The notes under the pieces are model-generated. The model saw only the letters and a list, made by a program, of their open reading frames with translations. It was not told the origin of the DNA and searched no databases. From the NCBI RefSeq assembly GCF_032444005.1, contig NC_091288.1, forward strand, positions 198,400,001 through 198,464,000: a stretch of 64,000 nt of DNA, given 5' to 3'. Below are positions 1 to 55,656 of the stretch, in pieces. Numbering within the stretch: the stretch's first letter is position 1; each line of letters begins with the position of its first letter. The DNA is from Ranitomeya imitator. Taxonomy: Eukaryota. The position numbers were made by a program, and so were the translations under genes.

Positions 1-45
1 ATGATCAGTGCCACCACCTTCTCCCCGCAGAGCTGTATGATCAGA

Positions 46-157
46 GCACGGTGGCGCAGTGGTTAGCACAGCAGCCTTGCAGCGCTGGGGTCCTGGGTTC
101 TAATCCCACCCAGGACAACATCTGCAAAGAGTTTGTATGTTCTCTCCGTGTTTGCGT

Positions 158-188
<31 letters not shown>

Positions 189-322
189 ACATTCCAAAGA
201 CATACTGATAGGGATTCTAGATTGTGAGCCCCATCGGGGACAGTGGTGATAATGTGTGCAAAACTGTAAAGCGCTGCGGAATATGTTAGCGCTATATAAA
301 AATAAAGATTATTATTATTATT
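46..322 (+). mobile_element. tRNA-derived V-SINE-type element with L2-like 3' tail, copy 1
   Basis: A-box tggcgcagtgg, B-box-like ggttctaatcc, V-domain-like core tgtatgttctctccgtgtttgcgtgggtttcctccggg..., tail gtaaagcgc...gcgctata plus (att)5, and target duplication atcaga. Confidence 0.85.
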
Positions 323-6028: not shown

Positions 6029-6140
6029 GCACGGTGGCGCAGTGGTTAGCACAGCAGCCTTGCAGCGCTGGGGTCCTGGGTTCTAATCCCACCCAGGACA
6101 ACATCTGCAAAGAGTTTGTATGTTCTCTCCGTGTTTGCGT

Positions 6141-6171
<31 letters not shown>

Positions 6172-6305
6172 ACATTCCAAAGACATACTGATAGGGATTC
6201 TAGATTGTGAGCCCCATCGGGGACAGTGGTGATAATGTGTGCAAAACTGTAAAGCGCTGCGGAATATGTTAGCGCTATATAAAAATAAAGATTATTATTA
6301 TTATT
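6029..6305 (+). mobile_element. V-SINE copy 2
   Basis: Same sequence and flanks as copy 1, offset 5983 bp. Confidence 0.85.
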
Positions 6306-9300
6306 ATCAGAGCCACCACATTCTCCCCGCAGAGCTGTAGGATCAGAGCCATCACCTCCTCCCCGCAGAGCTGTATGATCAGTGCCACCACCCTCTCCCC
6401 GCAGAGCTGTATGATCAGAGCCACCACCTACTCCCCTCAGACCTGTATGATCAGAGCCATAACCTCCTCCTCCCTGCAGAGCTGTATGATCAGAGAAATC
6501 ACCTCCTCCCCGGAGAGCTGTATGATCAGTGCCAACACCTTCTCCCCGCAGAGCTGTATGATCAGTGCCACCACCTCCTCCCTGCAGAGCTGTATGATCA
6601 GTGCCACCACCTCCTCCCCGCAGAGCTGTATGATCAGTGCCACCACCTCCTCCCCGCAGAGCTGTATGATCAGAGCCACCTCCTCCTCCCCGCAGAGCTG
6701 TATGATCAGTGCCACCACCTCCTCCCCGCAGAGCTGTATGATCAGTGCCACCTCCTCCTCCCCGCAGAGCTGTATGATCAGAGCCACCACCTCCTCCCCG
6801 CAGAGCTGTATGATCAGAGACACCACCTCCTCCCTGCAGAGCTGTATGATCAGAGAAATCACCTCCTCCCCGCACAGCTGTATGATCAGTACCACCACCT
6901 CCTCCCCGCAGAGCTGTATGATCAGTGCCACCTCCTCCTCCCCGCAGAGCTGTATGATCAGAGCCACCACCTCCTCCCCGCAGAGCTGTATGATCAGAGA
7001 CACCACCTCCTCCCTGCAGAGCTGTATGATCAGAGAAATCATCTCCTCCCCGCACAGCTGTATGATCAGTACCACCACCTCCTCCCCGCAGAGCTGTATG
7101 ATCAGAGCCACCACCTCCTCCCCGCAGAGCTGTATGATCAGTACCACCACCTCCTCCCCGCAGAGCTGTATGATCAGTGCCACCACCTCCTCCCCGCAGA
7201 GCTGCATGATCAGAGCCACCACCTCCTCTCCGCAGAGCTGTATGATCAGAGCCACCACCTCCTCCCTGCAGAGCTGTATGATCAGAGAAATCACCTCCTC
7301 CCCGGAGAGCCGTATGATCAGTGCCACCACCTTCTCCCCGCAGAGCTGTATGATCAGAGCCACCACATTCTCCCCGCAGAGCTGTAGGATCAGAGCCATC
7401 ACCTCCTCCCCGCAGAGCTGTATGATCAGTGCCACCACCCTCTCCCCGCAGAGCTGTATGATCAGAGCCACCACCTACTCCCCTCAGACCTGTATGATCA
7501 GAGCCATAACCTCCTCCTCCCTGCAGAGCTGTATGATCAGAGAAATCACCTCCTCCCCGGAGAGCTGTATGATCAGTGCCAACACCTTCTCCCCGCAGAG
7601 CTGTATGATCAGTGCCACCACCTCCTCCCTGCAGAGCTGTATGATCAGTGCCACCACCTCCTCCCCGCAGAGCTGTACGATCACTGCCACCACCTCCTCC
7701 CCGCAGAGCTGTATGATCAGTGCCACCACCTCCTCCCCGCAGAGCTGTATGATCAGTGCCACCACCTCCTCCCCGCAGAGCTGTATGATCAGTGCCACCA
7801 CCTCCTCCCCGCAGAGCTGTATGATCAGTGCCACCTCCTCCTCCCCGCAGAGCTGTATGATCAGTGCCACCACCTCCTCCCCGCAGAGATGTATGATCAG
7901 AGCCACCACCTCCTCCCTGCAGAGCTGTATGATCAGAGAAATCACCTCCTCCCCGCAGAGCTGTATGATCAGTGCCACCACCTCCTCCCCGCAGAGCTGT
8001 ATGATCAGTGCCACCACCTCCTCCCCGCAGAGCTGTATGATCAGTGCCACCACCTCCTCCCCGCAGAGCTGTATGATAAGTGCCACCACCTCCTCCCTGC
8101 AGAGCTGTATGATCAGAGAAATCACCTCCTCCCCGCACAGCTGTATGATCAGTGCCACCACCTCCTCCCCGCAGAGCTGTATGATCAGTGCCACCTCCTC
8201 CTCCCCGCAGAGCTGTATGATCAGTGCCACCACCTCCTCCCCGCAGAGCTGTATCATCAGTGCCACCACCTACTCCTCCCTGCAGAGCTGTCTGATCAGA
8301 GAAATCACCTCCACCCCGCAGAGCTGTATGATCAGTGCCACCACCTTCTCCCCCGCAGAGCTGTATGATCAGAGCCACCACTTCCTCCCCGCAGAGCTGT
8401 ATAATCAGTGCCACCACCTCCAACCCGCAGAGCTGTATGATCAGAGAAATCACCTCCACCCCGCAGAGCTGTATGATCAAAGCCACCACCTCCTCCCCGC
8501 AGAGCTGTATGATCAGAGCCACCACCCTCTCCCCGCAGAGCTGTATAATCAGTGCCACCACCTCCTCCCCGCAGAGCTGTATGATCAGTGCCACCACCTC
8601 CTCCCCTCAGAGCTGTATGATCAGTGCCACCACCTCCTCCCCGCAGGGCTGTATGATCAGTGCCACCTCCTCCTCCCCGCAGAGCTGTATGATCAGAGAA
8701 ATCACCTCCACCCCGCAGAGCTGTATGATCAGTGCCACCACCTCCTCCCCGCAGAGCTGTATCATCAGTGCCACCACCTACTCCTCCCTGCAGAGCTGTA
8801 TGATCAGAGAAATCACCTCCACCCCGCAGAGCTGTATGATCAGTGCCACCACCTTCTCCCCCGCAGAGCTGTATGATCAGAGCCACCACTTCCTCCCCGC
8901 AGAGCTGTATAATCAGTGCCACCACCTCCACCCCGCAGAGCTGTATGATCAGAGAAATCACCTCCACCCCGCAGAGCTGTATGATCAGAGCCACCACCTC
9001 CTCCCCGCAGAGCTGTATGATCAGAGCCACCACCCTCTCCCCGCAGAGCTGTATAATCAGTGCCACCACCTCCTCCCCGCAGAGCTGTATGATCAGTGCC
9101 ACCACCTCCTCCCCGCAGAGCTGTATGATCAGTGCCACCACCTCCTCCCCGCAGAGCTGTATGATCAGAGCCACCACCTCCTCCCTGCAGAGCTGTATGA
9201 TCAGAGAAATCACCTCCTCCCCGCACAGCTGTATGATCAGTACCACCACCTCCTCCCCGCAGAGCAGCATGATCAGAGCCACCACCTCCTCCCCGCAGAG

Positions 9301-12300
9301 TTGTATGATCAGTGCCACCACCTCCTCCCCGCAGAGCTGTATGATCAGTGCCACCTCCTCCTCCCCGCAGAGCTGTATGATCAGAGAAATCACCTCCACC
9401 CCGCAGAGCTGTATGATCAGTGCCACCACCTCCTCCCCGCAGAGCTGTATCATCAGTGCCACCACCTACTCCTCCCTGCAGAGCTGTATGATCAGAGAAA
9501 TCACCTCCACCCCGCAGAGCTGTATGATCAGAGCCACCACCTCCTCCCCGCAGAGCTGTATGATCAGAGCCACCACCCTCTCCCCGCAGAGCTGTATAAT
9601 CAGTGCCACCACCTCCTCCCCGCAGAGCTGTATGATCAGTGCCACCACCTCCTCCCCGTAGAGCTGTATGATCAGTGCCACCACCTCCTCCCCGCAGAGC
9701 TGTATGATCAGTGCCACCTCCTCCTCCCCGCAGAGCTGTATGATCAGAGCCACCTCCTCCTCCCCGCAGAGCTGTATGATCAGTGCCACCACCTCCTCCC
9801 CGCAGAGCTGTATGATCAGTGCCACCACCTCCTCCCCGCAGAGCTGTATGATCAGTGCCACCACCTCCTCCCCGCAGAGCTGTATGATCAGTGCCACCTC
9901 CTCCTCCCCGCAGAGCTGTATGATCAGAGCCACCACCTCCTCCCCGCAGAGCTGTATGATCAGAGCCACCACCTCCTCCCTGCAGAGCTGTATGATCAGA
10001 GAAATCACCTCCTCCCCGCACAGCTGTATGATCAGTACCACCACCTCCTCCCCGCAGAGCTGTATGATCAGAGCCACCACCTCCTCCCCGCAGAGCTGTA
10101 TGATCAGAGCCACCACTTCCTCCCTGCAGAGCTGTATGATCAGAGAAATCACCTCCTCCCCGCAGAGCTGTATGATCAGTGCCACCACCTCCTCCCCGCA
10201 GAGCTGTATGATCAGTGCCACCACCTCCTCCCCGCAGAGCTGTATGATCAGTGCCACCACCTCCTCCCCGCAGAGCTGTATGATCAGTGCCACCACCTCC
10301 TCCCTGCAGAGCTGTATGATCAGAGCCACCACATTCTCCCCGCAGAGCTGTAGGATCAGAGCCATCACCTCCTCCTCGCAGAGCTGTATGATCAGTGCCA
10401 CCACCCTCTCCCCGCAGAGCTGTATGATCAGAGCCACCACCTACTCCCCTCAGACCTGTATGATCAGAGCCATAACCTCCTCCTCCCTGCAGAGCTGTAT
10501 GATCAGAGAAATCACCTCCTCCCCGGAGAGCTGTATGATCAGTGCCAACACCTTCTCCCCGCAGAGCTGTATGATCAGTGCCACCACCTCCTCCCTCCAG
10601 AGCTGTATGATCAGTGCCACCACCTCCTCCCCGCAGAGCTGTACGATCAGTGCCACCACCTCCTCCCCGCAGAGCTGTATGATCAGTGCCACCACCTCCT
10701 CCCCGCAGAGCTGTATGATCAGTGCCACCACCTCCTCCCCGCAGAGCTGTATGATCAGTGCCACCACCTCCTCCCCGCAGAGCTGTATGATCAGTGCCAC
10801 CTCCTCCTCCCCGCAGAGCTGTATGATCAGTGCCACCACCTCCTCCCCGCAGAGCTGTATCATCAGTGCCACCACCTACTCCTCCCTGCAGAGCTGTATG
10901 ATCAGAGAAATCACCTCCACCCCGCAGAGCTGTATGATCAGTGCCACCACCTCCTCCCTGCAGAGCTGTATGATCAGAGCCACCACATTCTCCCCGCAGA
11001 GCTGTAGGATCAGAGCCATCACCTCCTCCCCGCAGAGCTGTATGATCAGTGCCACCACCCTCTCCCCGCAGAGCTGTATGATCAGAGCCACCACCTACTC
11101 CCCTCAGACCTGTATGATCAGAGCCATAACCTCCTCCTCCCTGCAGAGCTGTATGATCAGAGAAATCACCTCCTCCCCGGAGAGCTGTATGATCAGTGCC
11201 ACCTCCTCCTCCCCGCAGAGCTGTATGATCAGTGCCACCACCTCCTCCCCGCAGAGCTGTATGATCAGTGCCACCACCTCCTCCCCGCAGAGCTGTATGA
11301 TCAGTGCCACCTCCTCCTCCCCGCAGAGCTGTATGATCAGTGCCACCACCTCCTCCCCGCAGAGCTGTATGATCAGTGCCACCACCTCCTCCCCGCAGAG
11401 CTGTATGATCAGTGCCACCTCCTCCTCCCCGCAGAGCTGTATAATCAGAGCCACCTCCTCCTCCCCGCAGAGCTGTATGATCAGTGCCACCACCTCCTCC
11501 CCGCAGAGCTGTATGATCAGTGCCATCACCTCCTCCCCGCAGAGATGTATGATCAGAGCCACCACCTCCTCCCTGCAGAGCTGTATGATCAGAGAAATCA
11601 CCTCCTCCCCGCAGAGCTGTATGATCAGTGCCACCAGCTCTTCCCCGCAGAGCTGTATGATCAGTGCCACCACCTCCTCCCCGCAGAGCTGTATGATCAG
11701 TGCCACCACCTCCTCCCCGCAGAGCTGTATGATCAGTGCCACCACCTCCTCCCTGCAGAGCTGTATGATCAGATCCACCACCTCCTCCCCGCACAGCTGT
11801 ATGATCAGTGCCACCACCTCCTCCCCGCAGAGCTGTATGATCAGTGCCACCTCCTCCTCCCCGCAGAGCTGTATGATCAGTGCCACCACCTCCTCCCCGC
11901 AGAGCTGTATCATCAGTGCCACCACCTACTCCTCCCTGCAGAGCTGTATGATCAGAGAAATCACCTCCACCCCGCAGAGCTGTATGATCAGTGCCACCAC
12001 CTTCTCCCCCGCAGAGCTGTATGATCAGAGCCACCACTTCCTCCCCGCAGAGCTGTATAATCAGTGCCACCACCTCCACCCCGCAGAGCTGTATGATCAG
12101 AGAAATCACCTCCACCCCGCAGAGCTGTATGATCAGAGCCACCACCTCCTCCCCGCAGAGCTGTATGATCAGAGCCACCACCCTCTCCCCGCAGAGCTGT
12201 ATAATCAGTGCCACCACCTCCTCCCCGCAGAGCTGTATGATCAGTGCCACCACCTCCTCCCCGCAGAGCTGTATGATCAGTGCCACCACCTCCTCCCCGC

Positions 12301-14333
12301 AGGGCTGTATGATCAGTGCCACCTCCTCCTCCCCGCAGAGCTGTATGATCAGAGAAATCACCTCCACCCCGCAGAGCTGTATGATCAGTGCCACCACCTC
12401 CTCCCCGCAGAGCTGTATCATCAGTGCCACCACCTACTCCTCCCTGCAGAGCTGTATGATCAGAGAAATCACCTCCACCCCGCAGAGCTGTATGATCATT
12501 GCCACCACCTTCTCCCCGCAGAGCTGTATGATCAGTGCCACCTCCTCCTCCCCGCAGAGCTGTATGATCAGAGAAATCACCTCCACCCCGCAGAGCTGTA
12601 TGATCAGTGCCACCACCTCCTCCCCGCAGAGCTGTATCATCAGTGCCACCACCTACTCCTCCCTGCAGAGCTGTATGATCAGAGAAATCACCTCCACCCC
12701 GCAGAGCTGTATGATCAGAGCCACCACCTCCTCCCCGCAGAGCTGTATGATCAGAGCCACCACCCTCTCCCCGCAGAGCTGTATAATCAGTGCCACCACC
12801 TCCTCCCCGCAGAGCTGTATGATCAGTGCCACCACCTCCTCCCCGCAGAGCTGTATGATCAGTGCCACCACCTCCTCCCCGCAGAGCTGTATGATCAGTG
12901 CGACCTCCTCCTCCCCGCAGAGCTGTATGATCAGAGCCACCTCCTCCTCCCCGCAGAGCTGTATGATCAGTGCCACCACCTCCTCCCCGCAGAGCTGTAT
13001 GATCAGTGCCACCACCTCCTCCCCGCAGAGCTGTATGATCAGTGCCACCACCTCCTCCCCGCAGAGCTGTATGATCAGTGCCACCTCCTCCTCCCCGCAG
13101 AGCTGTATGATCAGAGCCACCACCTCCTCCCCGCAGAGCTGTATGATCAGAGCCACCACCTCCTCCCTGCAGAGCTGTATGATCAGAGAAATCACCTCCT
13201 CCCCGCACAGCTGTATGATCAGTACCACCACCTCCTCCCCGCAGAGCTGTATGATCAGAGCCACCACCTCCTCCCCGCAGAGCTGTATGATCAGAGCCAC
13301 CACCTCCTCCCTGCAGAGCTGTATGATCAGAGAAATCACCTCCTCCCCGCAGAGCTGTATGATCAGTGCCACCACCTCCTCCCCGCAGAGCTGTATGATC
13401 AGTGCCACCACCTCCTCCCCGCAGAGCTGTATGATCAGTGCCACCACCTCCTCCCCGCAGAGCTGTATGATCAGTGCCACCACCTCCTCCCTGCAGAGCT
13501 GTATGATCAGAGCCACCACCTCCTCCCCGCAGACCTGTATGATCAGTGCCTCCACCTCCTCCCCGCAGAGCTGTATGATCAGTGCCACCACCCTCTCCCC
13601 GCAGAGCTGTATGATCAGAGCCACCACCTACTCCCCTCAGACCTGTATGATCAGAGCCATAACCTCCTCCTCCCTGCAGAGCTGTATGATCAGAGAAATC
13701 ACCTCCTCCCCGGAGAGCTGTATGATCAGTGCCAACACCTTCTCCCCGCAGAGCTGTATGATCAGTGCCACCACCTCCTCCCTGCAGAGCTGTATGATCA
13801 GTGCCACCACCTCCTCCCCGCAGAGCTGTACGATCAGTGCCACCACCTCCTCCCCGCAGAGCTGTATGATCAGTGCCACCACCTCCTCCCCGCAGAGCTG
13901 TATGATCAGTGCCACCACCTCCTCCCCGCAGAGCTGTATGATCAGTGCCACCACCTCCTCCCCGCAGAGCTGTATGATCAGTGCCACCTCCTCCTCCCCG
14001 CAGAGCTGTATGATCAGTGCCACCACCTCCTCCCCGCAGAGCTGTATCATCAGTGCCACCACCTACTCCTCCCTGCAGAGCTGTATGATCAGAGAAATCA
14101 CCTCCACCCCGCAGAGCTGTATGATCAGTGCCACCACCTCCTCCCCGCAGAGCTGTATGATCGGTTTTCCTACTTGTAATGTTTTTAATATAACTGATGC
14201 TGGGCGCAGTCTCAGGATGGGGGGTTTGTGTGATCTGACGATAATGTGGGAGCTGCACTGTACAGCGCTATACACGGGGACATTTCAACGCAGATACATC
14301 AGCTGCTCCAGCAGCGGCAAATGAGTGATCTGA

Positions 14334-14981
<648 letters not shown>

Positions 14982-35404: not shown

Positions 35405-35725
<321 letters not shown>

Positions 35726-37224: not shown

Positions 37225-37269
37225 CTGTAGGAAGGACACAATTATTGATTATTAACCTTCCATAGCATA

Positions 37270-37550: not shown

Positions 37551-37921
37551 TGAGAGAGAGAAAGAGAGAGATAAAGTGAAAGAGAGAGAATGAGAAAGAA
37601 GGAGATAGAGAGAAAGAAAGGGAGAAAGAGAGAGAGAGAGACAAAGAGACATAAAGAGAGAGAGAGAGAAGAGAGATAAAGAAAGAGAGAAGGAGAGAGA
37701 TAGATATAAAGTAAGAAAAAGAGAAAGCAAGGGAAAGAGAGGGAGAGAGAGAAATAGAAAGGAAGAAAGAGTAAGAGTGAGAGAAATATTTAGAGAAAAA
37801 AGAAGAGAGAAAGAAAGAGAGGAGAGCGAAGAGAGAAAGGAGAGAAGGAAATAATGAAAGAGAGGAGAGAGAAATAGAGATTAAGAAAGAGGGAGAGAGA
37901 GAGAAAGAAGAAGAGAGGGGA
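37551..37921. repeat. GA-rich low-complexity tract
   Basis: Almost pure purine (ga)n-like sequence. Confidence 0.9.
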
Positions 37922-37922
37922 G

Positions 37923-38130
37923 ACTGCTCTATATACTGTACACTCTGGTCTATAAATTGTACACACTGCTGTATATACTTTACACACTGCTCTATATACT
38001 GTACACACTGCTGTATGTACTGTACACACTGGCTCTATATACTGTGCACACTGCTGTATATACTGTACACTCTGCTCTATATACTGTGTACTCTGCTGTA
38101 TATACTGTACACTCTGCTGTATATACTGTA
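37923..38130. repeat. ~21-bp tandem repeat
   Basis: ctgct(c/g)tatatactgtacac(a/t) repeated about 9 times. Confidence 0.85.
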
Positions 38131-38924
38131 CCCTCTCCTCTAGTATCAGTGACACTTATTACACTGCTGATCTGGGCTGTGCAGATGTGATGTTGTGCAC
38201 TATATATACTATGTACAGCTGTGTTCTCTGTGTAGACGCTGGATTTTGTGTCTCCGCTTTTCTCCCAATATTCCCCTTTTACACAATAGTGGGGGTCACA
38301 TAAATCCATTAATATTTCAGTTTTCTCCCCGGAGATGTTTATGTGTTTGGTTGGGGAGTCGCAGTGTGCAGCTGTCGCCTCATCAGAGCTCTTCGCACCA
38401 TGACAGGCCGCAGCGGTCACAGCTTCACACTGGGTAAGACACGATATCAGGCAGGTGATTGCAATCAGCCACCGATGTGGATCATCTACTGGTGTGGAAC
38501 ACGTGTCCCCCCAATCCTCTGCACATACGGGGTACAGTGACACCACAGGTCAGGGAGGTGGCAGTCAGCGGAGGCCGTCGCCTGTGTTACCCTTCTGGGT
38601 TGTCAGCAGCTCCAGCTCGTCCCCACATCGTACAATCAGCTTCCTGTGCGATAGACATAGGAGTAAAGATCCCTGTGATGGTGACAGGAGCCGGGAATAG
38701 GAGGAACGAGCTCCCGCAGCAGATTTATCTCCCCGGATACACAGTGATGTGCAGATCGGGAGGACGGCGGCGATGATCCCGGGATTTCCTCTCCGCTCTT
38801 TCCCGGCATCTCTGCTAGTGACGGCTACAAATGGCCGGTGGAGATGTTGGAGAAGGGGAGGCGACGGAGGAATCGCGCTCTGCTGTCCGGTGTTAGCCGG
38901 TAAAGGGCTTTTATCCCGGGCAGG

Positions 38925-39132: not shown

Positions 39133-39771
39133 ATGATGGCAGAGACCGCGCCAGCCGCCGCTCCCCCTCCCGCAGAACCGGCCGCCAAATCCAAGAAGCA
39201 GCCGAAGAAATCTGCTGCCAAGAAGAGCAATAAACCCTCCGGCCCCAGCGTCTCCGAGCTGATCGTGAAAGCCGTGTCCGCCTCCAAGGAGCGCAGCGGG
39301 GTGTCTCTGTCCGCCCTGAAGAAGGCTCTGTCTGCTGGAGGATACGATGTAGAGAAGAACAACAGCCGCCTGAAGCTGGCCGTCAAGGCTCTGGTCACCA
39401 AGGGCGCCCTCCTCCAGGTGAAAGGCAGCGGCGCCTCCGGGTCCTTCAAGCTGAACAAGAAGCAGGAGACGAAGGACAAAGTGGCCAAGAAGAAGCCAGC
39501 AGCTGCGGCCAAACCCAAGAAACCCGCTGCTGCCAAGAAAGCCGCCAAATCTCCGAAGAAGCCCAAGAAGGCTCCGACTGCGGCCAAGAAGAGCCCGAAA
39601 AAGGCCAAGAAGCCCGCAGCGGCCAAGAAAGCGGCCAAGAGCCCCAAGAAGCCGAAAGCCGCTCCCAAGCCCAAGAAGGTGACGAAGAGTCCGGCTAAGA
39701 AGGCGGCCAAACCCGCCAAGAGTCCGGCTAAGAACGCTGCGAAAGCCAAGAAGCCCGCGGCTAAGAAATAA
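39133..39771 (+). CDS. H1: Histone H1 (replication-dependent linker histone)
   Basis: (M)[11 protein letters not shown]...[43 protein letters not shown]...[13 protein letters not shown] plus a K/A/P-rich tail. The start could be 39133 or 39136. Confidence 0.97.
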
Positions 39772-39799
39772 GCTGCAGCCCCTGTTCTGTTACCACAAA

Positions 39800-39815
39800 G
39801 GCTCTTATAAGAGCC
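39800..39815 (+). terminator. Histone 3' stem-loop (H1), atypical TATA loop
   Basis: aaa-ggctct-tata-agagcc-accac, with HDE agagctgta at 39832-39840. Confidence 0.93.
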
Positions 39816-41075
39816 ACCACCTCCTCCCCGCAGAGCTGTATGATCAGTGCCACCACCTCCTCCCCGCAGAGCTGTATGATCAGTGCCACCACCTCCTCCC
39901 CGCAGAGCTGTATGATCAGTGCCACCACTTCCTCCCCGCAGAGCTGTATCATCAGTGCCACCACCTCCTCCCCGCAGAGCTGTATGATCAGTGCCACCTC
40001 CTCCTCCCCGCAGAGCTGTATGATCAGAGCCACCACCTCCTCCCCGCAGAGCTGTATGATCAGAGCCACCATCTCCTCCCCGCAGAGCTGTATGATCAGA
40101 GCCACCACCTCCTCTCCGCAGAGATGTATGATCAGAGCCACCACCTCCTCCCTGCAGAGCTGTATGATCAGTACCACCACCTCCTCCCCGCAGAGCTGTA
40201 TGATCAGTGCCACCTCCTCCTCCCCGCAGAGCTGTATGATCAGTGCCACCACCTCCTCCCCGCAGAGCTGTATGATCAGTGCCACCTCCTCCTCCCCGCA
40301 GAGCTGTATGATCAGAGAAATCACCTCCTCCCCGCACAGCTGTATGATCAGTACCACCACCTCCTCCCCGCAGAGCTGTATGATCAGTGCCACCACCTCC
40401 TCCCCGCAGAGCTGCATGATCAGAGCCACCACCTCCTCTCCGCAGAGCTGTATGATCAGAGCCACCACCTCCTCCCTGCAGAGCTGTATGATCAGAGAAA
40501 TCACCTCCTCCCCGGAGAGCCGTATGATCAGTGCCACCACCTTCTCCCCGCAGAGCTGTATGATCAGAGCCACCACATTCTCCCCGCAGAGCTGTAGGAT
40601 CAGAGCCATCACCTCCTCCCCGCAGAGCTGTATGATCAGTGCCACCACCCTCTCCCCGCAGAGCTGTATGATCAGAGCCACCACCTACTCCCCTCAGACC
40701 TGTATGATCAGAGCCATAACCTCCTCCTCCCTGCAGAGCTGTATGATCAGAGAAATCACCTCCTCCCCGGAGAGCTGTATGATCAGTGCCAACACCTTCT
40801 CCCCGCAGAGCTGTATGATCAGTGCCACCACCTCCTCCCCGCAGAGCTGTATGATCAGTGCCACCACCTCCTCCCCGCAGAGCTGTATGATCAGTGCCAC
40901 CACCTCCTCCCCGCAGAGCTGTATGATCAGTGCCACCACCTCCTCCCCGCAGAGCTGTATGATCAGTGCCACCACCTCCTCCCCGCAGAGCTGTATGATC
41001 AGTGCCACCACCTCCTCCCCGGAGAGCCGTATGATCAGTGCCACCACCTTCTCCCCGCAGAGCTGTATGATCAGA

Positions 41076-41187
41076 GCACGGTGGCGCAGTGGTTAGCACA
41101 GCAGCCTTGCAGCGCTGGGGTCCTGGGTTCTAATCCCACCCAGGACAACATCTGCAAAGAGTTTGTATGTTCTCTCCGTGTTTGCGT

Positions 41188-41218
<31 letters not shown>

Positions 41219-41358
41219 ACATTCCAAAGACATACTGATAGGGATTCTAGATTGTGAGCCCCATCGGGGACAGTGGTGATAATGTGTGCAAAACTGTAAA
41301 GCGCTGCGGAATATGTTAGCGCTATATAAAAATAAAGATTATTATTATTATTATTATT
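41076..41358 (+). mobile_element. V-SINE copy 3
   Basis: Same sequence and insertion site, with (att)7 tail. Confidence 0.85.
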
Positions 41359-42123
41359 ATCAGAGCCACCACATTCTCCCCGCAGAGCTGTAGGATCAGA
41401 GCCATCACCTCCTCCCCGCAGAGCTGTATGATCAGTGCCACCACCCTCTCCCCGCAGAGCTGTATGATCAGAGCCACCACCTACTCCCCTCAGACCTGTA
41501 TGATCAGAGCCATAACCTCCTCCTCCCTGCAGAGCTGTATGATCAGAGAAATCACCTCCTCCCCGGAGAGCTGTATGATCAGTGCCAACACCTTCTCCCC
41601 GCAGAGCTGTATGATCAGTGCCACCTCCTCCTCCCCGCAGAGCTGTATGATCAGAGCCACCTCCTCCTCCCCGCAGAGCTGTATGATCAGTGCCACCACC
41701 TCCTCCCCGCAGAGCTGTATGATCAGTGCCACCTCCTCCTCCCCGCAGAGCTGTATGATCAGAGCCACCACCTCCTCCCCGCAGAGCTGTATGATCAGAG
41801 ACACCACCTCCTCCCTGCAGAGCTGTATGATCAGAGAAATCACCTCCTCCCCGGAGAGCTGTATGATCAGTGCCAACACCTTCTCCCCGCAGAGCTGTAT
41901 GATCAGTGCCACCACCTCCTCCCCGCAGAGCTGTATGATCAGTGCCACCACCTCCTCCCCGCAGAGCTGTATGATCAGTGCCACCACCTCCTCCCCGCAG
42001 AGCTGTATGATCAGTGCCACCACCTCCTCCCCGCAGAGCTGTATGATCAGTGCCACCACCTCCTCCCCGGAGAGCCGTATGATCAGTGCCACCACCTTCT
42101 CCCCGCAGAGCTGTATGATCAGA

Positions 42124-42235
42124 GCACGGTGGCGCAGTGGTTAGCACAGCAGCCTTGCAGCGCTGGGGTCCTGGGTTCTAATCCCACCCAGGACAACATC
42201 TGCAAAGAGTTTGTATGTTCTCTCCGTGTTTGCGT

Positions 42236-42266
<31 letters not shown>

Positions 42267-42400
42267 ACATTCCAAAGACATACTGATAGGGATTCTAGAT
42301 TGTGAGCCCCATCGGGGACAGTGGTGATAATGTGTGCAAAACTGTAAAGCGCTGCGGAATATGTTAGCGCTATATAAAAATAAAGATTATTATTATTATT
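42124..42400 (+). mobile_element. V-SINE copy 4
   Basis: Same sequence and insertion site, with (att)5 tail, 1048 bp after copy 3. Confidence 0.85.
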
Positions 42401-45400
42401 ATCAGAGCCACCACATTCTCCCCGCAGAGCTGTAGGATCAGAGCCATCACCTCCTCCCCGCAGAGCTGTATGATCAGTGCCACCACCCTCTCCCCGCAGA
42501 GCTGTATGATCAGAGCCACCACCTACTCCCCTCAGACCTGTATGATCAGAGCCATAACCTCCTCCTCCCTGCAGAGCTGTATGATCAGAGAAATCACCTC
42601 CTCCCCGGAGAGCTGTATGATCAGTGCCAACACCTTCTCCCCGCAGAGCTGTATGATCAGTGCCACCACCTCCTCCCTGCAGAGCTGTATGATCAGTGCC
42701 ACCACCTCCTCCCCGCAGAGCTGTATGATCAGTGCCACCACCTCCTCCCCGCAGAGCTGTATGATCAGAGCCACCTCCTCCTCCCCGCAGAGCTGTATGA
42801 TCAGTGCCACCACCTCCTCCCCGCAGAGCTGTATGATCAGTGCCACCTCCTCCTCCCCGCAGAGCTGTATGATCAGAGCCACCACCTCCTCCCCGCAGAG
42901 CTGTATGATCAGAGACACCACCTCCTCCCTGCAGAGCTGTATGATCAGAGAAATCACCTCCTCCCCGCACAGCTGTATGATCAGTACCACCACCTCCTCC
43001 CCGCAGAGCTGTATGATCAGTGCCACCTCCTCCTCCCCGCAGAGCTGTATGATCAGAGCCACCACCTCCTCCCCGCAGAGCTGTATGATCAGAGACACCA
43101 CCTCCTCCCTGCAGAGCTGTATGATCAGAGAAATCATCTCCTCCCCGCACAGCTGTATGATCAGTACCACCACCTCCTCCCCGCAGAGCTGTATGATCAG
43201 AGCCACCACCTCCTCCCCGCAGAGCTGTATGATCAGTACCACCACCTCCTCCCCGCAGAGCTGTATGATCAGTGCCACCACTTCCTCCCCGCAGAGCTGC
43301 ATGATCAGAGCCACCACCTCCTCTCCGCAGAGCTGTATGATCAGAGCCACCACCTCCTCCCTGCAGAGCTGTATGATCAGAGAAATCACCTCCTCCCCGG
43401 AGAGCCGTATGATCAGTGCCACCACCTTCTCCCCGCAGAGCTGTATGATCAGAGCCACCACATTCTCCCCGCAGAGCTGTAGGATCAGAGCCATCACCTC
43501 CTCCCCGCAGAGCTGTATGATCAGTGCCACCACCCTCTCCCCGCAGAGCTGTATGATCAGAGCCACCACCTACTCCCCTCAGACCTGTATGATCAGAGCC
43601 ATAACCTCCTCCTCCCTGCAGAGCTGTATGATCAGAGAAATCACCTCCTCCCCGGAGAGCTGTATGATCAGTGCCAACACCTTCTCCCCGCAGAGCTGTA
43701 TGATCAGTGCCACCACCTCCTCCCTGCAGAGCTGTATGATCAGTGCCACCACCTCCTCCCCGCAGAGCTGTACGATCACTGCCACCACCTCCTCCCCGCA
43801 GAGCTGTATGATCAGTGCCACCACCTCCTCCCCGCAGAGCTGTATGATCAGTGCCACCACCTCCTCCCCGCAGAGCTGTATGATCAGTGCCACCACCTCC
43901 TCCCCGCAGAGCTGTATGATCAGTACCACCACCTCCTCCCCGCAGAGCTGTATGATCAGTGCCACCTCCTCCTCCCCGCAGAGCTGTATGATCAGAGCCA
44001 CCACCTCCTCCCCGCAGAGCTGTATGATCAGAGACACCACCTCCTCCCTGCAGAGCTGTATGATCAGAGAAATCATCTCCTCCCCGCACAGCTGTATGAT
44101 CAGTACCACCACCTCCTCCCCGCAGAGCTGTATGATCAGAGCCACCACCTCCTCCCCGCAGAGCTGTATGATCAGTACCACCACCTCCTCCCCGCAGAGC
44201 TGTATGATCAGTGCCACCACTTCCTCCCCGCAGAGCTGCATGATCAGAGCCACCACCTCCTCTCCGCAGAGCTGTATGATCAGAGCCACCACCTCCTCCC
44301 TGCAGAGCTGTATGATCAGAGAAATCACCTCCTCCCCGGAGAGCCGTATGATCAGTGCCACCACCTTCTCCCCGCAGAGCTGTATGATCAGAGCCACCAC
44401 ATTCTCCCCGCAGAGCTGTAGGATCAGAGCCATCACCTCCTCCCCGCAGAGCTGTATGATCAGTGCCACCACCCTCTCCCCGCAGAGCTGTATGATCAGA
44501 GCCACCACCTACTCCCCTCAGACCTGTATGATCAGAGCCATAACCTCCTCCTCCCTGCAGAGCTGTATGATCAGAGAAATCACCTCCTCCCCGGAGAGCT
44601 GTATGATCAGTGCCAACACCTTCTCCCCGCAGAGCTGTATGATCAGTGCCACCACCTCCTCCCTGCAGAGCTGTATGATCAGTGCCACCACCTCCTCCCC
44701 GCAGAGCTGTACGATCACTGCCACCACCTCCTCCCCGCAGAGCTGTATGATCAGTGCCACCACCTCCTCCCCGCAGAGCTGTATGATCAGTGCCACCACC
44801 TCCTCCCCGCAGAGCTGTATGATCAGTGCCACCACCTCCTCCCCGCAGAGCTGTATGATCAGTGCCACCTCCTCCTCCCCGCAGAGCTGTATGATCAGTG
44901 CCACCACCTCCTCCCCGCAGAGATGTATGATCAGAGCCACCACCTCCTCCCTGCAGAGCTGTATGATCAGAGAAATCACCTCCTCCCCGCAGAGCTGTAT
45001 GATCAGTGCCACCACCTCCTCCCCGCAGAGCTGTATGATCAGTGCCACCACCTCCTCCCCGCAGAGCTGTATGATCAGTGCCACCACCTCCTCCCCGCAG
45101 AGCTGTATGATCAGTGCCACCACCTCCTCCCTGCAGAGCTGTATGATCAGAGAAATCACCTCCTCCCCGCACAGCTGTATGATCAGTGCCACCACCTCCT
45201 CCCCGCAGAGCTGTATGATCAGTGCCACCTCCTCCTCCCCGCAGAGCTGTATGATCAGTGCCACCACCTCCTCCCCGCAGAGCTGTATCATCAGTGCCAC
45301 CACCTACTCCTCCCTGCAGAGCTGTATGATCAGAGAAATCACCTCCACCCCGCAGAGCTGTATGATCAGTGCCACCACCTTCTCGCCCGCAGAGCTGTAT

Positions 45401-48400
45401 GATCAGAGCCACCACTTCCTCCCCGCAGAGCTGTATAATCAGTGCCACCACCTCCAACCCGCAGAGCTGTATGATCAGAGAAATCACCTCCACCCCGCAG
45501 AGCTGTATGATCAAAGCCACCACCTCCTCCCCGCAGAGCTGTATGATCAGAGCCACCACCCTCTCCCCGCAGAGCTGTATAATCAGTGCCACCACCTCCT
45601 CCCCGCAGAGCTGTATGATCAGTGCCACCACCTCCTCCCCGCAGAGCTGTATGATCAGTGCCACCACCTCCTCCCCGCAGGGCTGTATGATCAGTGCCAC
45701 CTCCTCCTCCCCGCAGAGCTGTATGATCAGAGAAATCACCTCCACCCCGCAGAGCTGTATGATCAGTGCCACCACCTCCTCCCCGCAGAGCTGTATCATC
45801 AGTGCCACCACCTACTCCTCCCTGCAGAGCTGTATGATCAGAGAAATCACCTCCACCCCGCAGAGCTGTATGATCAGTGCCACCACCTTCTCCCCCGCAG
45901 AGCTGTATGATCAGAGCCACCACTTCCTCCCCGCAGAGCTGTATAATCAGTGCCACCACCTCCACCCCGCAGAGCTGTATGATCAGAGAAATCACCTCCA
46001 CCCCGCAGAGCTGTATGATCAGAGCCACCACCTCCTCCCCGCAGAGCTGTATGATCAGAGCCACCACCCTCTCCCCGCAGAGCTGTATAATCAGTGCCAC
46101 CACCTCCTCCCCGCAGAGCTGTATGATCAGTGCCACCACCTCCTCCCCGCAGAGCTGTATGATCAGTGCCACCACCTCCTCCCCGCAGAGCTGTATGATC
46201 AGAGCCACCACCTCCTCCCTGCAGAGCTGTATGATCAGAGAAATCACCTCCTCCCCGCACAGCTGTATGATCAGTACCACCACCTCCTCCCCGCAGAGCA
46301 GCATGATCAGAGCCACCACCTCCTCCCCGCAGAGTTGTATGATCAGTGCCACCACCTCCTCCCCGCAGAGCTGTATGATCAGTGCCACCTCCTCCTCCCC
46401 GCAGAGCTGTATGATCAGAGAAATCACCTCCACCCCGCAGAGCTGTATGATCAGTGCCACCACCTCCTCCCCGCAGAGCTGTATCATCAGTGCCACCACC
46501 TACTCCTCCCTGCAGAGCTGTATGATCAGAGAAATCACCTCCACCCCGCAGAGCTGTATGATCAGAGCCACCACCTCCTCCCCGCAGAGCTGTATGATCA
46601 GAGCCACAACCCTCTCCCCGCAGAGCTGTATAATCAGTGCCACCACCTCCTCCCCGCAGAGCTGTATGATCAGTGCCACCACCTCCTCCCCGCAGAGCTG
46701 TATGATCAGTGCCACCACCTCCTCCCCGCAGAGCTGTATGATCAGTGCCACCTCCTCCTCCCCGCAGAGCTGTATGATCAGAGCCACCTCCTCCTCCCCG
46801 CAGAGCTGTATGATCAGTGCCACCACCTCCTCCCCGCAGAGCTGTATGATCAGTGCCACCACCTCCTCCCCGCAGAGCTGTATGATCAGTGCCACCACCT
46901 CCTCCCCGCAGAGCTGTATGATCAGTGCCACCTCCTCCTCCCCGCAGAGCTGTATGATCAGAGCCACCACCTCCTCCCCGCAGAGCTGTATGATCAGAGC
47001 CACCACCTCCTCCCTGCAGAGCTGTATGATCAGAGAAATCACCTCCTCCCCGCACAGCTGTATGATCAGTACCACCACCTCCTCCCCGCAGAGCTGTATG
47101 ATCAGAGCCACCACCTCCTCCCCGCAGAGCTGTATGATCAGAGCCACCACCTCCTCCCTGCAGAGCTGTATGATCAGAGAAATCACCTCCTCCCCGCAGA
47201 GCTGTATGATCAGTGCCACCACCTCCTCCCCGCAGAGCTGTATGATCAGTGCCACCACCTCCTCCCCGCAGAGCTGTATGATCAGTGCCACCACCTCCTC
47301 CCCGCAGAGCTGTATGATCAGTGCCACCACCTCCTCCCTGCAGAGCTGTATGATCAGAGCCACCACATTCTCCCCGCAGAGCTGTAGGATCAGAGCCATC
47401 ACCTCCTCCCCGCAGAGCTGTATGATCAGTGCCACCACCCTCTCCCCGCAGAGCTGTATGATCAGAGCCACCACCTACTCCCCTCAGACCTGTATGATCA
47501 GAGCCATAACCTCCTCCTCCCTGCAGAGCTGTATGATCAGAGAAATCACCTCCTCCCCGGAGAGCTGTATGATCAGTGCCAACACTTTCTCCCCGCAGAG
47601 CTGTATGATCAGTGCCACCACCTCCTCCCTGCAGAGCTGTATGATCAGTGCCACCACCTCCTCCCCGCAGAGCTGTACGATCAGTGCCACCACCTCCTCC
47701 CCGCAGAGCTGTATGATCAGTGCCACCACCTCCTCCCCGCAGAGCTGTATGATCAGTGCCACCACCTCCTCCCCGCAGAGCTGTATGATCAGTGCCACCA
47801 CCTCCTCCCCGCAGAGCTGTATGATCAGTGCCACCTCCTCCTCCCCGCAGAGCTGTATGATCAGTGCCACCACCTCCTCCCCGCAGAGCTGTATCATCAG
47901 TGCCACCACCTACTCCTCCCTGCAGAGCTGTATGATCAGAGAAATCACCTCCACCCCGCAGAGCTGTATGATCAGTGCCACCACCTCCTCCCTGCAGAGC
48001 TGTATGATCAGAGCCACCACATTCTCCCCGCAGAGCTGTAGGATCAGAGCCATCACCTCCTCCCCGCAGAGCTGTATGATCAGTGCCACCACCCTCTCCC
48101 CGCAGAGCTGTATGATCAGAGCCACCACCTACTCCCCTCAGACCTGTATGATCAGAGCCATAACCTCCTCCTCCCTGCAGAGCTGTATGATCAGAGAAAT
48201 CACCTCCTCCCCGGAGAGCTGTATGATCAGTGCCACCTCCTCCTCCCCGCAGAGCTGTATGATCAGTGCCACCACCTCCTCCCCGCAGAGCTGTATGATC
48301 AGTGCCACCACCTCCTCCCCGCAGAGCTGTATGATCAGTGCCACCTCCTCCTCCCCGCAGAGCTGTATGATCAGTGCCACCACCTCCTCCCCGCAGAGCT

Positions 48401-51400
48401 GTATGATCAGTGCCACCACCTCCTCCCCGCAGAGCTGTATGATCAGTGCCACCTCCTCCTCCCCGCAGAGCTGTATAATCAGAGCCACCTCCTCCTCCCC
48501 GCAGAGCTGTATGATCAGTGCCACCACCTCCTCCCCGCAGAGCTGTATGATCAGTGCCATCACCTCCTCCCCGCAGAGATGTATGATCAGAGCCACCACC
48601 TCCTCCCTGCAGAGCTGTATGATCAGAGAAATCACCTCCTCCCCGCAGAGCTGTATGATCAGTGCCACCAGCTCTTCCCCGCAGAGCTGTATGATCAGTG
48701 CCACCACCTCCTCCCCGCAGAGCTGTATGATCAGTGCCACCACCTCCTCCCCGCAGAGCTGTATGATCAGTGCCACCACCTCCTCCCTGCAGAGCTGTAT
48801 GATCAGAGAAATCACCTCCTCCCCGCACAGCTGTATGATCAGTGCCACCACCTCCTCCCCGCAGAGCTGTATGATCAGTGCCACCTCCTCCTCCCCGCAG
48901 AGCTGTATGATCAGTGCCACCACCTCCTCCCCGCAGAGCTGTATCATCAGTGCCACCACCTACTCCTCCCTGCAGAGCTGTATGATCAGAGAAATCACCT
49001 CCACCCCGCAGAGCTGTATGATCAGTGCCACCACCTTCTCCCCCGCAGAGCTGTATGATCAGAGCCACCACTTCCTCCCCGCAGAGCTGTATAATCAGTG
49101 CCACCACCTCCACCCCGCAGAGCTGTATGATCAGAGAAATCACCTCCACCCCGCAGAGCTGTATGATCAGAGCCACCACCTCCTCCCCGCAGAGCTGTAT
49201 GATCAGAGCCACCACCCTCTCCCCGCAGAGCTGTATAATCAGTGCCACCACCTCCTCCCCGCAGAGCTGTATGATCAGTGCCACCACCTCCTCCCCGCAG
49301 AGCTGTATGATCAGTGCCACCACCTCCTCCCCGCAGGGCTGTATGATCAGTGCCACCTCCTCCTCCCCGCAGAGCTGTATGATCAGAGAAATCACCTCCA
49401 CCCCGCAGAGCTGTATGATCAGTGCCACCACCTCCTCCCCGCAGAGCTGTATCATCAGTGCCACCACCTACTCCTCCCTGCAGAGCTGTATGATCAGAGA
49501 AATCACCTCCACCCCGCAGAGCTGTATGATCATTGCCACCACCTTCTCCCCGCAGAGCTGTATGATCAGTGCCACCTCCTCCTCCCCGCAGAGCTGTATG
49601 ATCAGAGAAATCACCTCCACCCCGCAGAGCTGTATGATCAGTGTCACCACCTCCTCCCCGCAGAGCTGTATCATCAGTGCCACCACCTACTCCTCCCTGC
49701 AGAGCTGTATGATCAGAGAAATCACCTCCACCCCGCAGAGCTGTATGATCAGAGCCACCACCTCCTCCCCGCAGAGCTGTATGATCAGAGCCACCACCCT
49801 CTCCCCGCAGAGCTGTATAATCAGTGCCACCACCTCCTCCCCGCAGAGCTGTATGATCAGTGCCACCACCTCCTCCCCGCAGAGCTGTATGATCAGTGCC
49901 ACCACCTCCTCCCCGCAGAGCTGTATGATCAGTGCGACCTCCTCCTCCCCGCAGAGCTGTATGATCAGAGCCACCTCCTCCTCCCCGCAGAGCTGTATGA
50001 TCAGTGCCACCACCTCCTCCCCGCAGAGCTGTATGATCAGTGCCACCACCTCCTCCCCGCAGAGCTGTATGATCAGTGCCACCACCTCCTCCCCGCAGAG
50101 CTGTATGATCAGTGCCACCTCCTCCTCCCCGCAGAGCTGTATGATCAGAGCCACCACCTCCTCCCCGCAGAGCTGTATGATCAGAGCCACCACCTCCTCC
50201 CTGCAGAGCTGTATGATCAGAGAAATCACCTCCTCCCCGCACAGCTGTATGATCAGTACCACCACCTCCTCCCCGCAGAGCTGTATGATCAGAGCCACCA
50301 CCTCCTCCCCGCAGAGCTGTATGATCAGAGCCACCACCTCCTCCCTGCAGAGCTGTATGATCAGAGAAATCACCTCCTCCCCGCAGAGCTGTATGATCAG
50401 TGCCACCACCTCCTCCCCGCAGAGCTGTATGATCAGTGCCACCACCTCCTCCCCGCAGAGCTGTATGATCAGTGCCACCACCTCCTCCCCGCAGAGCTGT
50501 ATGATCAGTGCCACCACCTCCTCCCTGCAGAGCTGTATGATCAGAGCCACCACCTCCTCCCCGCAGACCTGTATGATCAGTGCCTCCACCTCCTCCCCGC
50601 AGAGCTGTATGATCAGTGCCACCACCCTCTCCCCGCAGAGCTGTATGATCAGAGCCACCACCTACTCCCCTCAGACCTGTATGATCAGAGCCATAACCTC
50701 CTCCTCCCTGCAGAGCTGTATGATCAGAGAAATCACCTCCTCCCCGGAGAGCTGTATGATCAGTGCCAACACCTTCTCCCCGCAGAGCTGTATGATCAGT
50801 GCCACCACCTCCTCCCTGCAGAGCTGTATGATCAGTGCCACCACCTCCTCCCCGCAGAGCTGTACGATCAGTGCCACCACCTCCTCCCCGCAGAGCTGTA
50901 TGATCAGTGCCACCACCTCCTCCCCGCAGAGCTGTATGATCAGTGCCACCACCTCCTCCCCGCAGAGCTGTATGATCAGTGCCACCACCTCCTCCCCGCA
51001 GAGCTGTATGATCAGTGCCACCTCCTCCTCCCCGCAGAGCTGTATGATCAGTGCCACCACCTCCTCCCCGCAGAGCTGTATCATCAGTGCCACCACCTAC
51101 TCCTCCCTGCAGAGCTGTATGATCAGAGAAATCACCTCCACCCCGCAGAGCTGTATGATCAGTGCCACCACCTTCTCCCCCGCAGAGCTGTATGATCAGT
51201 GCCACCACCTCCTCCCCGCAGAGCTGTATGATCGGTTTTCCTACTTGTAATGTTTTTAATATAACTGATGCTGGGCGCAGTCTCAGGATGGGGGGTTTGT
51301 GTGATCTGACGATAATGTGGGAGCTGCACTGTACAGCGCTATACACGGGGACATTTCAACGCAGATACATCAGCTGCTCCAGCAGCGGCAAATGAGTGAT

Positions 51401-51404
51401 CTGA

Positions 51405-52052
<648 letters not shown>

Positions 52053-55536: not shown

Positions 55537-55570
<34 letters not shown>

Positions 55571-55625
55571 AGTGGGAGATTAATATTGGCCTTTCTGCTT
55601 GTGTGCCAGTCTTGACTCCTGGGTG

Positions 55626-55656
<31 letters not shown>

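Follow-up and report, generated by a model that had tools for sequence, protein, structure and literature searches.

What brought several hundred copies of a U7-complementary element to the 3' side of a histone gene, and do these copies serve any purpose there? In the window, by which we mean the whole 64,000-nt stretch of Ranitomeya imitator DNA analysed here, the histone cluster recurs with a period of 37,071 bp in the order H3, H2B, H2A, H4, H1, array, H3, and a 36-bp array lies between the tandem clusters, 3' of H1 (Table 1). The anatomy, origin and turnover of this array, as well as its complementarity to human U7, are shown here.

Table 1. Coordinates of the histone genes, repeats and signals discussed in the text (window positions).
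Feature	Position	Strand	Basis or remark
Second, paralogous array of the preceding cluster copy	1..14162	+	at least 376 units, meets window start; TRF, sequence
Same SINE in second array	43-325 and 6026-6308		within 1..14162 array
Histone H1 gene, 212 aa + stop	39133..39771	+	ORF list; Pfam Linker_histone 2.1e-22
H1 mRNA 3' stem-loop GGCTCT-TATA-AGAGCC	39800..39815	+	sequence; Rfam RF00032
ACCAC cleavage-site context (39816-39820), 11-nt pyrimidine spacer, first HDE AGAGCTGTA (39832-39840)	39816..39840	+	sequence
36-bp minisatellite, ~314 units, 267 exact U7-complementary 9-mers	39810..51233	+	TRF, unit parsing, 9-mer counts
SINE inside array, sense-strand AATAAA at 41331	41073..41361	+	unit-parse gaps, AATAAA scan
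Second copy of SINE-bearing block, AATAAA at 42379	42121..42403	+	unit-parse gaps, AATAAA scan
Unique spacer + H3 promoter	51234..51641	+	sequence; 99.55% identical to 14163-16181
Next H3 gene	51642-52052		same strand as H1, downstream of array

The H1 processing signal and the repeat unit

The 3' end signal of replication-dependent histone genes consists of a stem-loop, an ACCCA cleavage site and a purine-rich downstream element (HDE), which is bound by U7 snRNP, lies ~10-15 nt past the cleavage site and is complementary to the 5' end of U7 snRNA. The hairpin (RF00032) measures 16 nt, with a 6-bp stem and a 4-nt loop that has U at loop positions 1 and 3; A-rich sequence precedes it and ACC(C)A follows. 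The H1 gene of the window, whose protein is 95-98% identical to Ranitomeya H1 proteins and has no exact counterpart on record, ends in what reads as such a hairpin: stem and loop U1/U3 are intact by eye, and the Rfam model gives 29.9 bits (E 1.5e-6), the gathering score of 34 not being reached. The layout and spacing from stem to HDE resemble those at H2A, H2B, H3 and H4 in the same window, where the downstream elements are of the AAGAGCC or GAGGGCTG type, and the segment that follows the H1 stem-loop is presumably the working H1 processing signal.

This signal is also where the array starts. The 3' arm of the stem-loop (39810-39815) doubles as the opening six bases of the array, which runs in phase from AGAGCC at 39810 to its last bases, ...GTATGATC, at 51233, where unique GGTTTTCC takes over; TRF calls the repeat from 39813 to 51233, with a period of 36 bp, 313.9 copies, 86% matches and the consensus GCCACCACCTCCTCCCCGCAGAGCTGTATGATCAGT. 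TRF and direct reading bear out a preliminary description of the locus, according to which the array begins at the H1 3' arm and ends on a whole unit, and the derivation from the H1 3' processing signal proposed there agrees with a phase that runs from the real stem arm via ACCAC to the first HDE. The first unit and the half-hairpin upstream of it make up a complete signal. As opposed to the canonical case, in which each gene has one signal, the signal is here reiterated hundreds of times, and units 2 to ~314 keep only the remnant of the 3' arm, mostly mutated to AGTGCC.

The order within the unit is stem-arm remnant, ACCAC, CTCCTCCCCGC, AGAGCTGTA and TGATC, with AGAGCTGTA 11 nt past ACCAC in every unit, the spacing of the natural signal. 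The general layout that had been ascribed to each 36-mer (stem arm, ACCAC, spacer, HDE) stands, with three amendments: (i) the arm reads AGTGCC in 59% of units and AGAGCC in most others; (ii) ~12% of units have a mutated 9-mer; (iii) two SINEs interrupt the array. Unit parsing yielded 300 units in the array behind H1 and 376 in the second array, where TRF reports 382 copies at 319-14162 and the repeat continues to base 1 across a SINE; 628 of the parsed units are exactly 36 nt long and fall into 74 distinct types. Exact copies of AGAGCTGTA number 599 in the two arrays (267 and 332, respectively), with a single one in the remaining 38.4 kb. As the units possess neither a 5' stem arm nor a loop, the HDE is present in them while the stem-loop and SLBP site are absent; over 39700-40300, a search with RF00032 returned no stem-loop match besides that of H1 itself, and none in repeat units.

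The strong strand asymmetry of the array (GC skew ~ -0.35), together with poly(C) tracts and a resemblance of the unit, judged by eye only, to a 3' splice site (CCTCCTCCCCGCAG) with GTATGA after it, raises the possibility that the array acts by other means than U7: as a platform of RNA or DNA that is C-rich or polypyrimidine, or as plain spacer DNA by which the H3 promoter is kept away from read-through of H1. The same-strand H1 and H3 genes are indeed 11.9 kb apart here, compared with ~1.0 kb in Phyllobates terribilis and ~0.9 kb on one R. imitator contig (gene-model spacing only), which suggests that much shorter H1-H3 gaps exist elsewhere. However, the variable positions of the unit, 3-16, take in much of the C-rich tract, and the variation in array length speaks against a tuned spacer; we regard a role of this kind as improbable.

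Duplication, turnover and constraint

Over 191 units (the 3' 191 units of the second array), the two arrays run colinear at 99.8% identity; their 5' halves differ through the insertion and deletion of blocks. The four SINE copies are identical over 341/341 positions, flanks included, and one insertion present four times at this identity indicates block duplication within the arrays. A search for higher-order repeats turned up nothing regular, the weak peaks falling at lags 88, 101 and 29 (in units). An AATAAA scan found the signal in the SINEs only, and H1 transcripts that escape cleavage would first meet a canonical poly(A) signal there, ~1.5 kb downstream; ARAGORN reported no tRNA-like gene in the SINE. 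Long repeats of perfect period are hard to assemble, and the exact unit counts may be wrong. That faulty assembly produced the array, or its length, is nevertheless very hard to believe, given that a long succession of variant units recurs in the same order in the two arrays, as do SINE landmarks, that independent public runs carry the repeat at very high depth along with the H1-to-array junction, and that an R. imitator gene and protein model extends into the first two of these units.

If the reiterated HDE were of use, its positions might be expected to change less freely than the rest of the unit, as the preliminary description had pointed out. They are not significantly less mutable in any of our tests: distinct variants occupy 11 of 27 possible in the HDE vs 42 of 81 in the rest (Fisher p=0.38), variant copy numbers do not differ significantly between the two (Mann-Whitney p=0.23), rare variants fall in the HDE in 5 of 23 cases vs 25% expected, and comparison of the paralogous arrays places 0 of ~10 recent events in the HDE (P ~0.06). 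Variants that break the HDE were multiplied in their turn and now number 17-22 copies. An unmutated HDE window occurs in 88.1% of units, the highest value of all 36 cyclic 9-nt windows, and 0 of 13 recent substitutions between the paralogous arrays fell in it, so that weak constraint is still possible at this sample size. The low-variation zone of the unit spans 22 nt (positions 17-36 plus 1-2) and is wider than the 9-mer.

The reading we favour, with a probability of about 0.6, is that of a young, fast-changing minisatellite that arose by tandem duplication of a 36-bp piece of the H1 3' flank, changed in length by unequal exchange, and most likely persists as a tolerated by-product. The shorter H1-H3 gaps suggested for Phyllobates terribilis and one R. 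imitator contig fit this reading. The founding piece would have extended from the first base of the stem-loop 3' arm, via ACCAC and the pyrimidine spacer, to 5 nt past the HDE, and its descendants would expand and contract through unequal exchange and block duplication, the whole being copied anew with every 37-kb tandem duplication of the histone cluster. Unit 1 would be the working HDE of H1, while later units would keep the 9-mer as recent, homogenised copies, selection on it not being demonstrable. H1 transcripts that escape cleavage would bear many unstructured U7 sites, and the effect would probably be mild at most, for example extra U7 binding or a backup chance of cleavage. An origin by slippage from the AGAGCC of the stem arm to the AGAGCT of the HDE was also considered, and rejected because the two are 22 nt apart, a distance that does not fit the 36-bp period.

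Pairing with U7 and transcription from H1

The 5' end of human U7, CAGUGUUACAGCUCUUUUAG, contains UACAGCUCU (PMC12360213 Table 1), and AGAGCTGTA complements nt 7-15 of the human snRNA, taken as reference in place of the frog's own, at 9/9 positions; the perfect 9-bp complement put forward in the preliminary description thus holds against the human 5' end (PMC12360213). With human U7, the predicted unit-U7 duplex has -14.5 kcal/mol vs -7.8 +/- 2.2 for shuffles, comparable to the downstream regions of H2B (-16.2) and H4 (-15.1) of the same cluster and better than those of H2A and H3. The 9-mer engages only UCU of the UCUUU box, which is universally conserved in U7 (PMC5054213). The window holds no U7 gene, and the Xenopus U7 sequence taken from the literature covers nt 19-56 (PMC2199211); the AAGAGCC- and GAGGGCTG-type elements of the other histone genes lend indirect support to pairing with the frog's own U7. 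A fold predicted for the first 181 nt (z = -0.08) contains no structure other than the H1 hairpin, and the array RNA would be unstructured.

As to transcription, contigs from three RNA-like runs (X1, X2, X20) join the H1 CDS or 3' UTR to positions 39842-39853 and leave the promoter uncovered, their library type being guessed and contig depth flat. In a run of a related species (X9), whose library type was likewise guessed, depth across the site drops from 5575 to 183 and then to 10. The evidence for read-through from H1 into the first units is weak; since the contigs cross the cleavage site, some exposure of HDE sites on RNA is probable. RNA-like runs scarcely cover the unique spacer on the far side of the array. 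In a DNA-like run the repeat is at least 200-fold over-represented relative to this spacer, and array-only contigs in RNA-like runs could therefore derive from trace genomic DNA. A 13.6-kb R. variabilis gene model (P0001) that might have reflected splicing across an array was discarded, its last exon matching the H4 3' flank (35371-35316, minus strand).

These observations bear on the main alternative, in which the array would be a functional multivalent platform: read-through H1 RNA with tens to hundreds of accessible HDEs would gather U7 snRNP, along with FLASH and CPSF73, at the histone locus, and could provide backup cleavage ~12 nt upstream of each HDE, freeing Pol II before the same-strand H3 promoter. 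To its credit are the 599 exact 9-mers with their 9/9 match to human U7, the predicted duplex on par with the H2B and H4 downstream regions, ACCAC kept at its natural distance from the HDE in each unit, the predicted lack of structure in array RNA, the rank of the HDE window as the best-preserved 9-mer, the RNA-like contigs that bridge the H1 3' UTR into the array, and the position of H3 downstream on the same strand. It also finds support in amphibian oocytes, whose histone locus bodies contain U7 snRNP and are located at histone loci (PMC12046345), and in chicken oocytes, where a condensate forms on nascent RNA of a tandem repeat with abundant snRNP-site motifs, which seeds it (bioRxiv 10.64898/2026.03.19.712899). 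On the other hand, constraint on the HDE is not significant, units devoid of a stem-loop offer the 9-bp duplex no help from SLBP, and the 9-mer uses only UCU of the conserved box (PMC5054213). Moreover, array length is hugely variable among copies and SINEs are tolerated, the unique spacer past the array is almost missing from RNA-like runs, and the array-only contigs may stem from trace genomic DNA. To our knowledge, other animals bring U7 to histone locus bodies via proteins, without such arrays. On balance, we consider a functional platform possible, with the odds clearly against it. The broader proposition, that the H1 3' flank of Ranitomeya-type frogs has become a multivalent U7 snRNP-binding RNA whose low-level read-through transcripts nucleate or enlarge the histone locus body, and could in addition serve as a serial U7/CPSF73 cleavage-termination array that protects H3, is less likely still. 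The sponge, scaffold or fail-safe role that the preliminary description had envisaged is possible but unsupported, and a conjecture, because constraint on the HDE is not significant, the units have no stem-loop, and the evidence for transcription is weak and confined to the first units.

Relation to known repeats

Akin to the array described here, kilobases of tandem repeat occupy the spacers between tandem histone clusters in another amphibian, the newt Notophthalmus, where, according to Gall and colleagues, read-through on lampbrush loops reportedly extends transcription into the satellite DNA. The newt repeat measures a few hundred bp per unit and is not known to be related to the processing signal, whereas here the unit is 36 bp long and is the HDE region itself, and read-through is weakly shown and for the first units only. 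Read-through transcription of satellites is mentioned in PMC2114352 and PMC12046345. With the repeat lying 3' of a histone gene in both cases, failed termination would transcribe it.

Classical hypervariable minisatellites are head-to-tail arrays of 10-100 bp units that extend over 0.5-30 kb, are GC-rich and strand-asymmetric, and turn over by unequal exchange. The 36-bp period, the arrays of 11.4 kb and at least 14.2 kb, the interspersed variant units, the block duplications and deletions between paralogous arrays and the G/C strand asymmetry all fit this class. Unlike classical minisatellites, the array can be traced to a defined RNA-processing element and, since it keeps a constant place behind one gene in a tandem multigene family, is co-amplified with that gene. 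The chicken LL2R repeat shares with it a motif in every unit that is complementary to or bound by an snRNP, and thereby potential multivalency on nascent RNA; for LL2R, however, transcription and the recruitment of splicing snRNPs by nascent transcripts were seen by microscopy (bioRxiv 10.64898/2026.03.19.712899), as opposed to the sequence complementarity and predicted lack of RNA structure reported here.

Satellites in histone-cluster spacers and minisatellite turnover are already known. In the literature searched, we came across no satellite built from the U7-binding downstream element of its neighbouring gene, and an origin from the H1 processing signal appears to be undescribed. An exact-pattern metagenome scan with a 24-mer of the unit gave 0 matches. 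Even if neutral, the array is a clean, datable case of a functional RNA-processing signal that seeded a satellite. Should the repeat RNA bind U7 snRNP, nature would have supplied an experiment on how a very scarce snRNP is recruited multivalently, with bearing on histone locus body assembly and on Pol II termination after histone genes, and a true snRNP platform would be the first case of an snRNP-site satellite that both stems from and acts on its own gene's processing machinery. A protein search with the array's artefact ORF returned a single weak match, which is irrelevant. For annotation the array is a hazard in two respects: (i) it contains artefact ORFs of 1,500 codons; (ii) it places hundreds of splice-acceptor-like sites 3' of H1.

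A repeat in phase with the H1 stem-loop

Slightly more than one period of a tandem histone cluster lies inside the window, and the 36-bp tandem array 3' of its H1 gene (the H1 array) has a paralogue at the window start. By TRF, the H1 array comprises 313.9 copies of a 36-bp period with 86% matches (39813-51233) and the paralogous array 382 copies (319-14162). The H1 mRNA hairpin GGCTCT-TATA-AGAGCC occupies 39800-39815, and the array phase begins at 39810, the first base of the hairpin's 3' arm; the array terminates in ...GTATGATC at 51233, with unique sequence beyond. The preliminary description, a minisatellite of 36-bp units made of the H1 processing signal, was thus right about the array, and the in-phase start on the 3' arm bears out the derivation it proposed. 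No earlier description of a satellite built from this signal was found in the literature.

The consensus unit reads AGTGCC ACCAC CTCCTCCCCGC AGAGCTGTA TGATC, in which AGAGCTGTA is the 9-mer of the U7-binding histone downstream element (HDE). Exact 9-mers number 267 in the H1 array, 332 in its paralogue and 1 in the remaining 38.4 kb, and the true arm AGAGCC is confined to the first unit and ~40% of the others. An Rfam search of 39700-40300 returned a single histone stem-loop, that of H1 itself (29.9 bits, below the gathering score of 34), and none in the repeat units, so that the units have the cleavage context and HDE without the hairpin bound by stem-loop-binding protein.

Arm repeats also occur beside two other genes of the cluster. 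In the H2B 3' flank (29093-29131) the 15-mer AAGAGCCACCCACAC, made up of the stem 3' arm and ACCCACAC, occurs again 24 nt further 3', at the place expected for the HDE, and in the H2A 3' flank (33691-33725) AAGAGCC is repeated with the same spacing. Judged from these flanks, stem arm and HDE are built-in direct repeats, at a spacing other than the 36 bp of the H1 array.

Features of the histone cluster and its arrays (window positions)
Feature	Position	Strand	Remark
Paralogous array	1-14162		first element, cut by window start
H3	14571-14981	+
H3-H2B block, ~10 kb	16695-27324		after first H3; 128-, 119- and 150-bp tandem arrays around the ORF
hAT transposase ORF	22241-25861	-	intact, 1206 aa, in H3-H2B block
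H2B	from 28672		partly N-masked
H2A	33259-33651	+
H4	35405-35716	-
ORFs	36180-37549		between H4 and H1
H1	39133-39771	+
H1 array	39810-51233		after H1
Next H3	51642-52052		after H1 array
SINE copies	43-325, 6026-6308, 41073-41361, 42121-42403		~285 bp

Growth and turnover of the arrays

The H1 array accounts for 11.4 kb of the 11.9 kb separating the H1 stop from the H3 start in the window, as against ~1.0 kb at one Phyllobates locus and ~0.9 kb on one R. imitator contig, and these shorter gaps agree with recent growth of the minisatellite. The window H1 protein is 95-98% identical to H1 of Ranitomeya variabilis and R. imitator and 90% identical to that of Phyllobates terribilis, which marks the genome as that of a dendrobatid poison frog, most probably a Ranitomeya. 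An R. imitator protein model in which the H1 stop codon is lost reads a 27-residue stretch, the exact translation of 39770-39850, and then PPPPPRRAV, the next unit in another frame, indicating that the repeat exists in this species.

The two array ends (14162 and 51233) lie 37,071 bp apart, and the flanks past them are 99.5% identical. Over their 3' 191 units the arrays are colinear, unit type for unit type, where they differ by 13 substitutions (0.19% per site) and a single change in length; block insertions and deletions set their 5' halves apart. Each array carries two SINE copies at the same unit junction, and all four are identical across 341 bp, flanks included, which points to a single insertion followed by block duplication within the array and duplication of the whole cluster. 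On this comparison of copies, turnover is ordinary, recent minisatellite behaviour. The SINE ends in TATATAAAAAATAAAGATT(ATT)n, one copy having two additional ATT repeats, and ARAGORN found no tRNA in it.

The hAT transposase ORF encodes zf-BED and hAT dimerisation domains. The surrounding block is inverted in the next cluster copy (54232-64000), with 96% identity in the transposon core and 85-91% in the repeat arrays on either side; the H3 flank preceding it is colinear between copies (99.5%). At 37552-38142, about 1 kb 5' of the H1 promoter, there are 10 copies of a 21-bp repeat and a (GA)n tract, degenerate and ~370 bp long.

Predicted U7 pairing and tests of constraint on the HDE

The 9-bp complement to U7 given in the preliminary description holds against the human molecule, whose 5' end is CAGUGUUACAGCUCUUUUAG (PMC12360213, Table 1): AGAGCTGTA pairs perfectly with nt 7-15. 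Of the UCUUU box, stated in the literature to be universally conserved in U7, it engages UCU alone, the remaining pairing running through UACAGC. Against the 20-mer human U7 5' end, the predicted duplex energy of the H1 array unit is -14.5 kcal/mol, compared with -16.2, -15.1, -11.8 and -8.0 kcal/mol for the regions downstream of H2B, H4, H2A and H3, respectively, and -7.8 +/- 2.2 kcal/mol for shuffled units. From ACCAC to the start of the HDE is 11 nt, a spacing similar to that in the other four histone genes. Folding predictions show array RNA as unstructured (z = -0.08), so that its candidate U7 sites would be accessible.

Such sites could make the array a functional U7 platform or a fail-safe cleavage array. 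Good analogies exist: in amphibians, U7 is present in the histone locus bodies that sit at histone loci (PMC12046345), and in chicken, snRNPs are recruited by RNA of the LL2R repeat (bioRxiv 10.64898/2026.03.19.712899). Our analysis found no direct support for either role, and we consider this explanation possible but the less likely one. By unit counts, positions 23-31 show 96-100% consensus, and 88.1% of units have the exact 9-mer unchanged, a larger share than for any other of the 36 cyclic windows. Windows starting at positions 21-30 are all 82-88% intact, the homogeneous zone spans 22 nt (positions 17-36 plus 1-2), and variation is concentrated at positions 3-16. Unit counts are non-independent events; by measures closer to independence, the HDE showed 11 of 27 possible distinct variants and other positions 42 of 81 (Fisher p = 0.38), variant copy numbers did not differ significantly (Mann-Whitney p = 0.23), 5 of 23 rare variants fell in the HDE (25% expected), and none of ~10 recent differences between the arrays did (P about 0.06). 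Variants that break the HDE have reached 17-22 copies by amplification. Free mutation of the HDE, which the preliminary description took as evidence against function, is neither clearly seen nor clearly contradicted, the constraint not being significant.

We favour, at a probability of roughly 0.6, a nearly neutral minisatellite: the H1 3' flank would have seeded it, amplification of the histone cluster would have copied it passively, and the U7 sites would persist since the array is young and homogenised.

Possible read-through and apparent annotation artefacts

Public sequencing runs were considered as Logan contig sets of guessed library type. In X1, X2 and X20 no contig covers the H1 promoter, the coding sequence has a depth of 7-17, array words occur at depth 10-80, and single contigs cross the cleavage site from coding sequence or 3' UTR to 39842-39853. 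In X9, a run from a related species in which the coding sequence is covered thousands of times, depth values across the site run 5575, 1295, 183, 90, 36 and 10. The contigs fit low-level read-through into the first units, as weak evidence, because contig depth is a whole-contig mean and few reads suffice for a junction, and because the array is over-represented, so that array-only contigs could come from traces of genomic DNA: in the DNA-like run X23, individual array contigs have depths of up to 1000-1100 and the binned depth goes up to 7000, with the neighbouring spacer (one per cluster copy) at 4.8. The unique spacer 3' of the array is almost missing from RNA-like runs. Sense-strand AATAAA occurs in the arrays only within SINEs (41331, 42379; 301, 6284), and escaped transcripts could thus be polyadenylated ~1.5 kb downstream of H1.

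By eye, each unit (e.g. 39821-39845) holds a vertebrate 3' splice site-like CCTCCTCCCCGCAG|AG with a donor-like GTATGA 4 nt on, which would place hundreds of decoy splice sites on any read-through RNA. A unit of 36 bp is 12 codons long, and two of the sense frames are free of stops; the arrays therefore contain artefact ORFs, the longest of 1503 aa (MISATTSSPQSC and PAELYDQCHHLL repeats; e.g. 9668-14179, 39840-41096), and a protein database search found no homologues of them. In the public R. variabilis gene model P0001, the H1 coding sequence is connected across 13.6 kb with a terminal exon whose sequence matches the H4 stem-loop and HDE region (35316-35371, minus strand); the model seems to be an annotation error produced by histone 3' ends.
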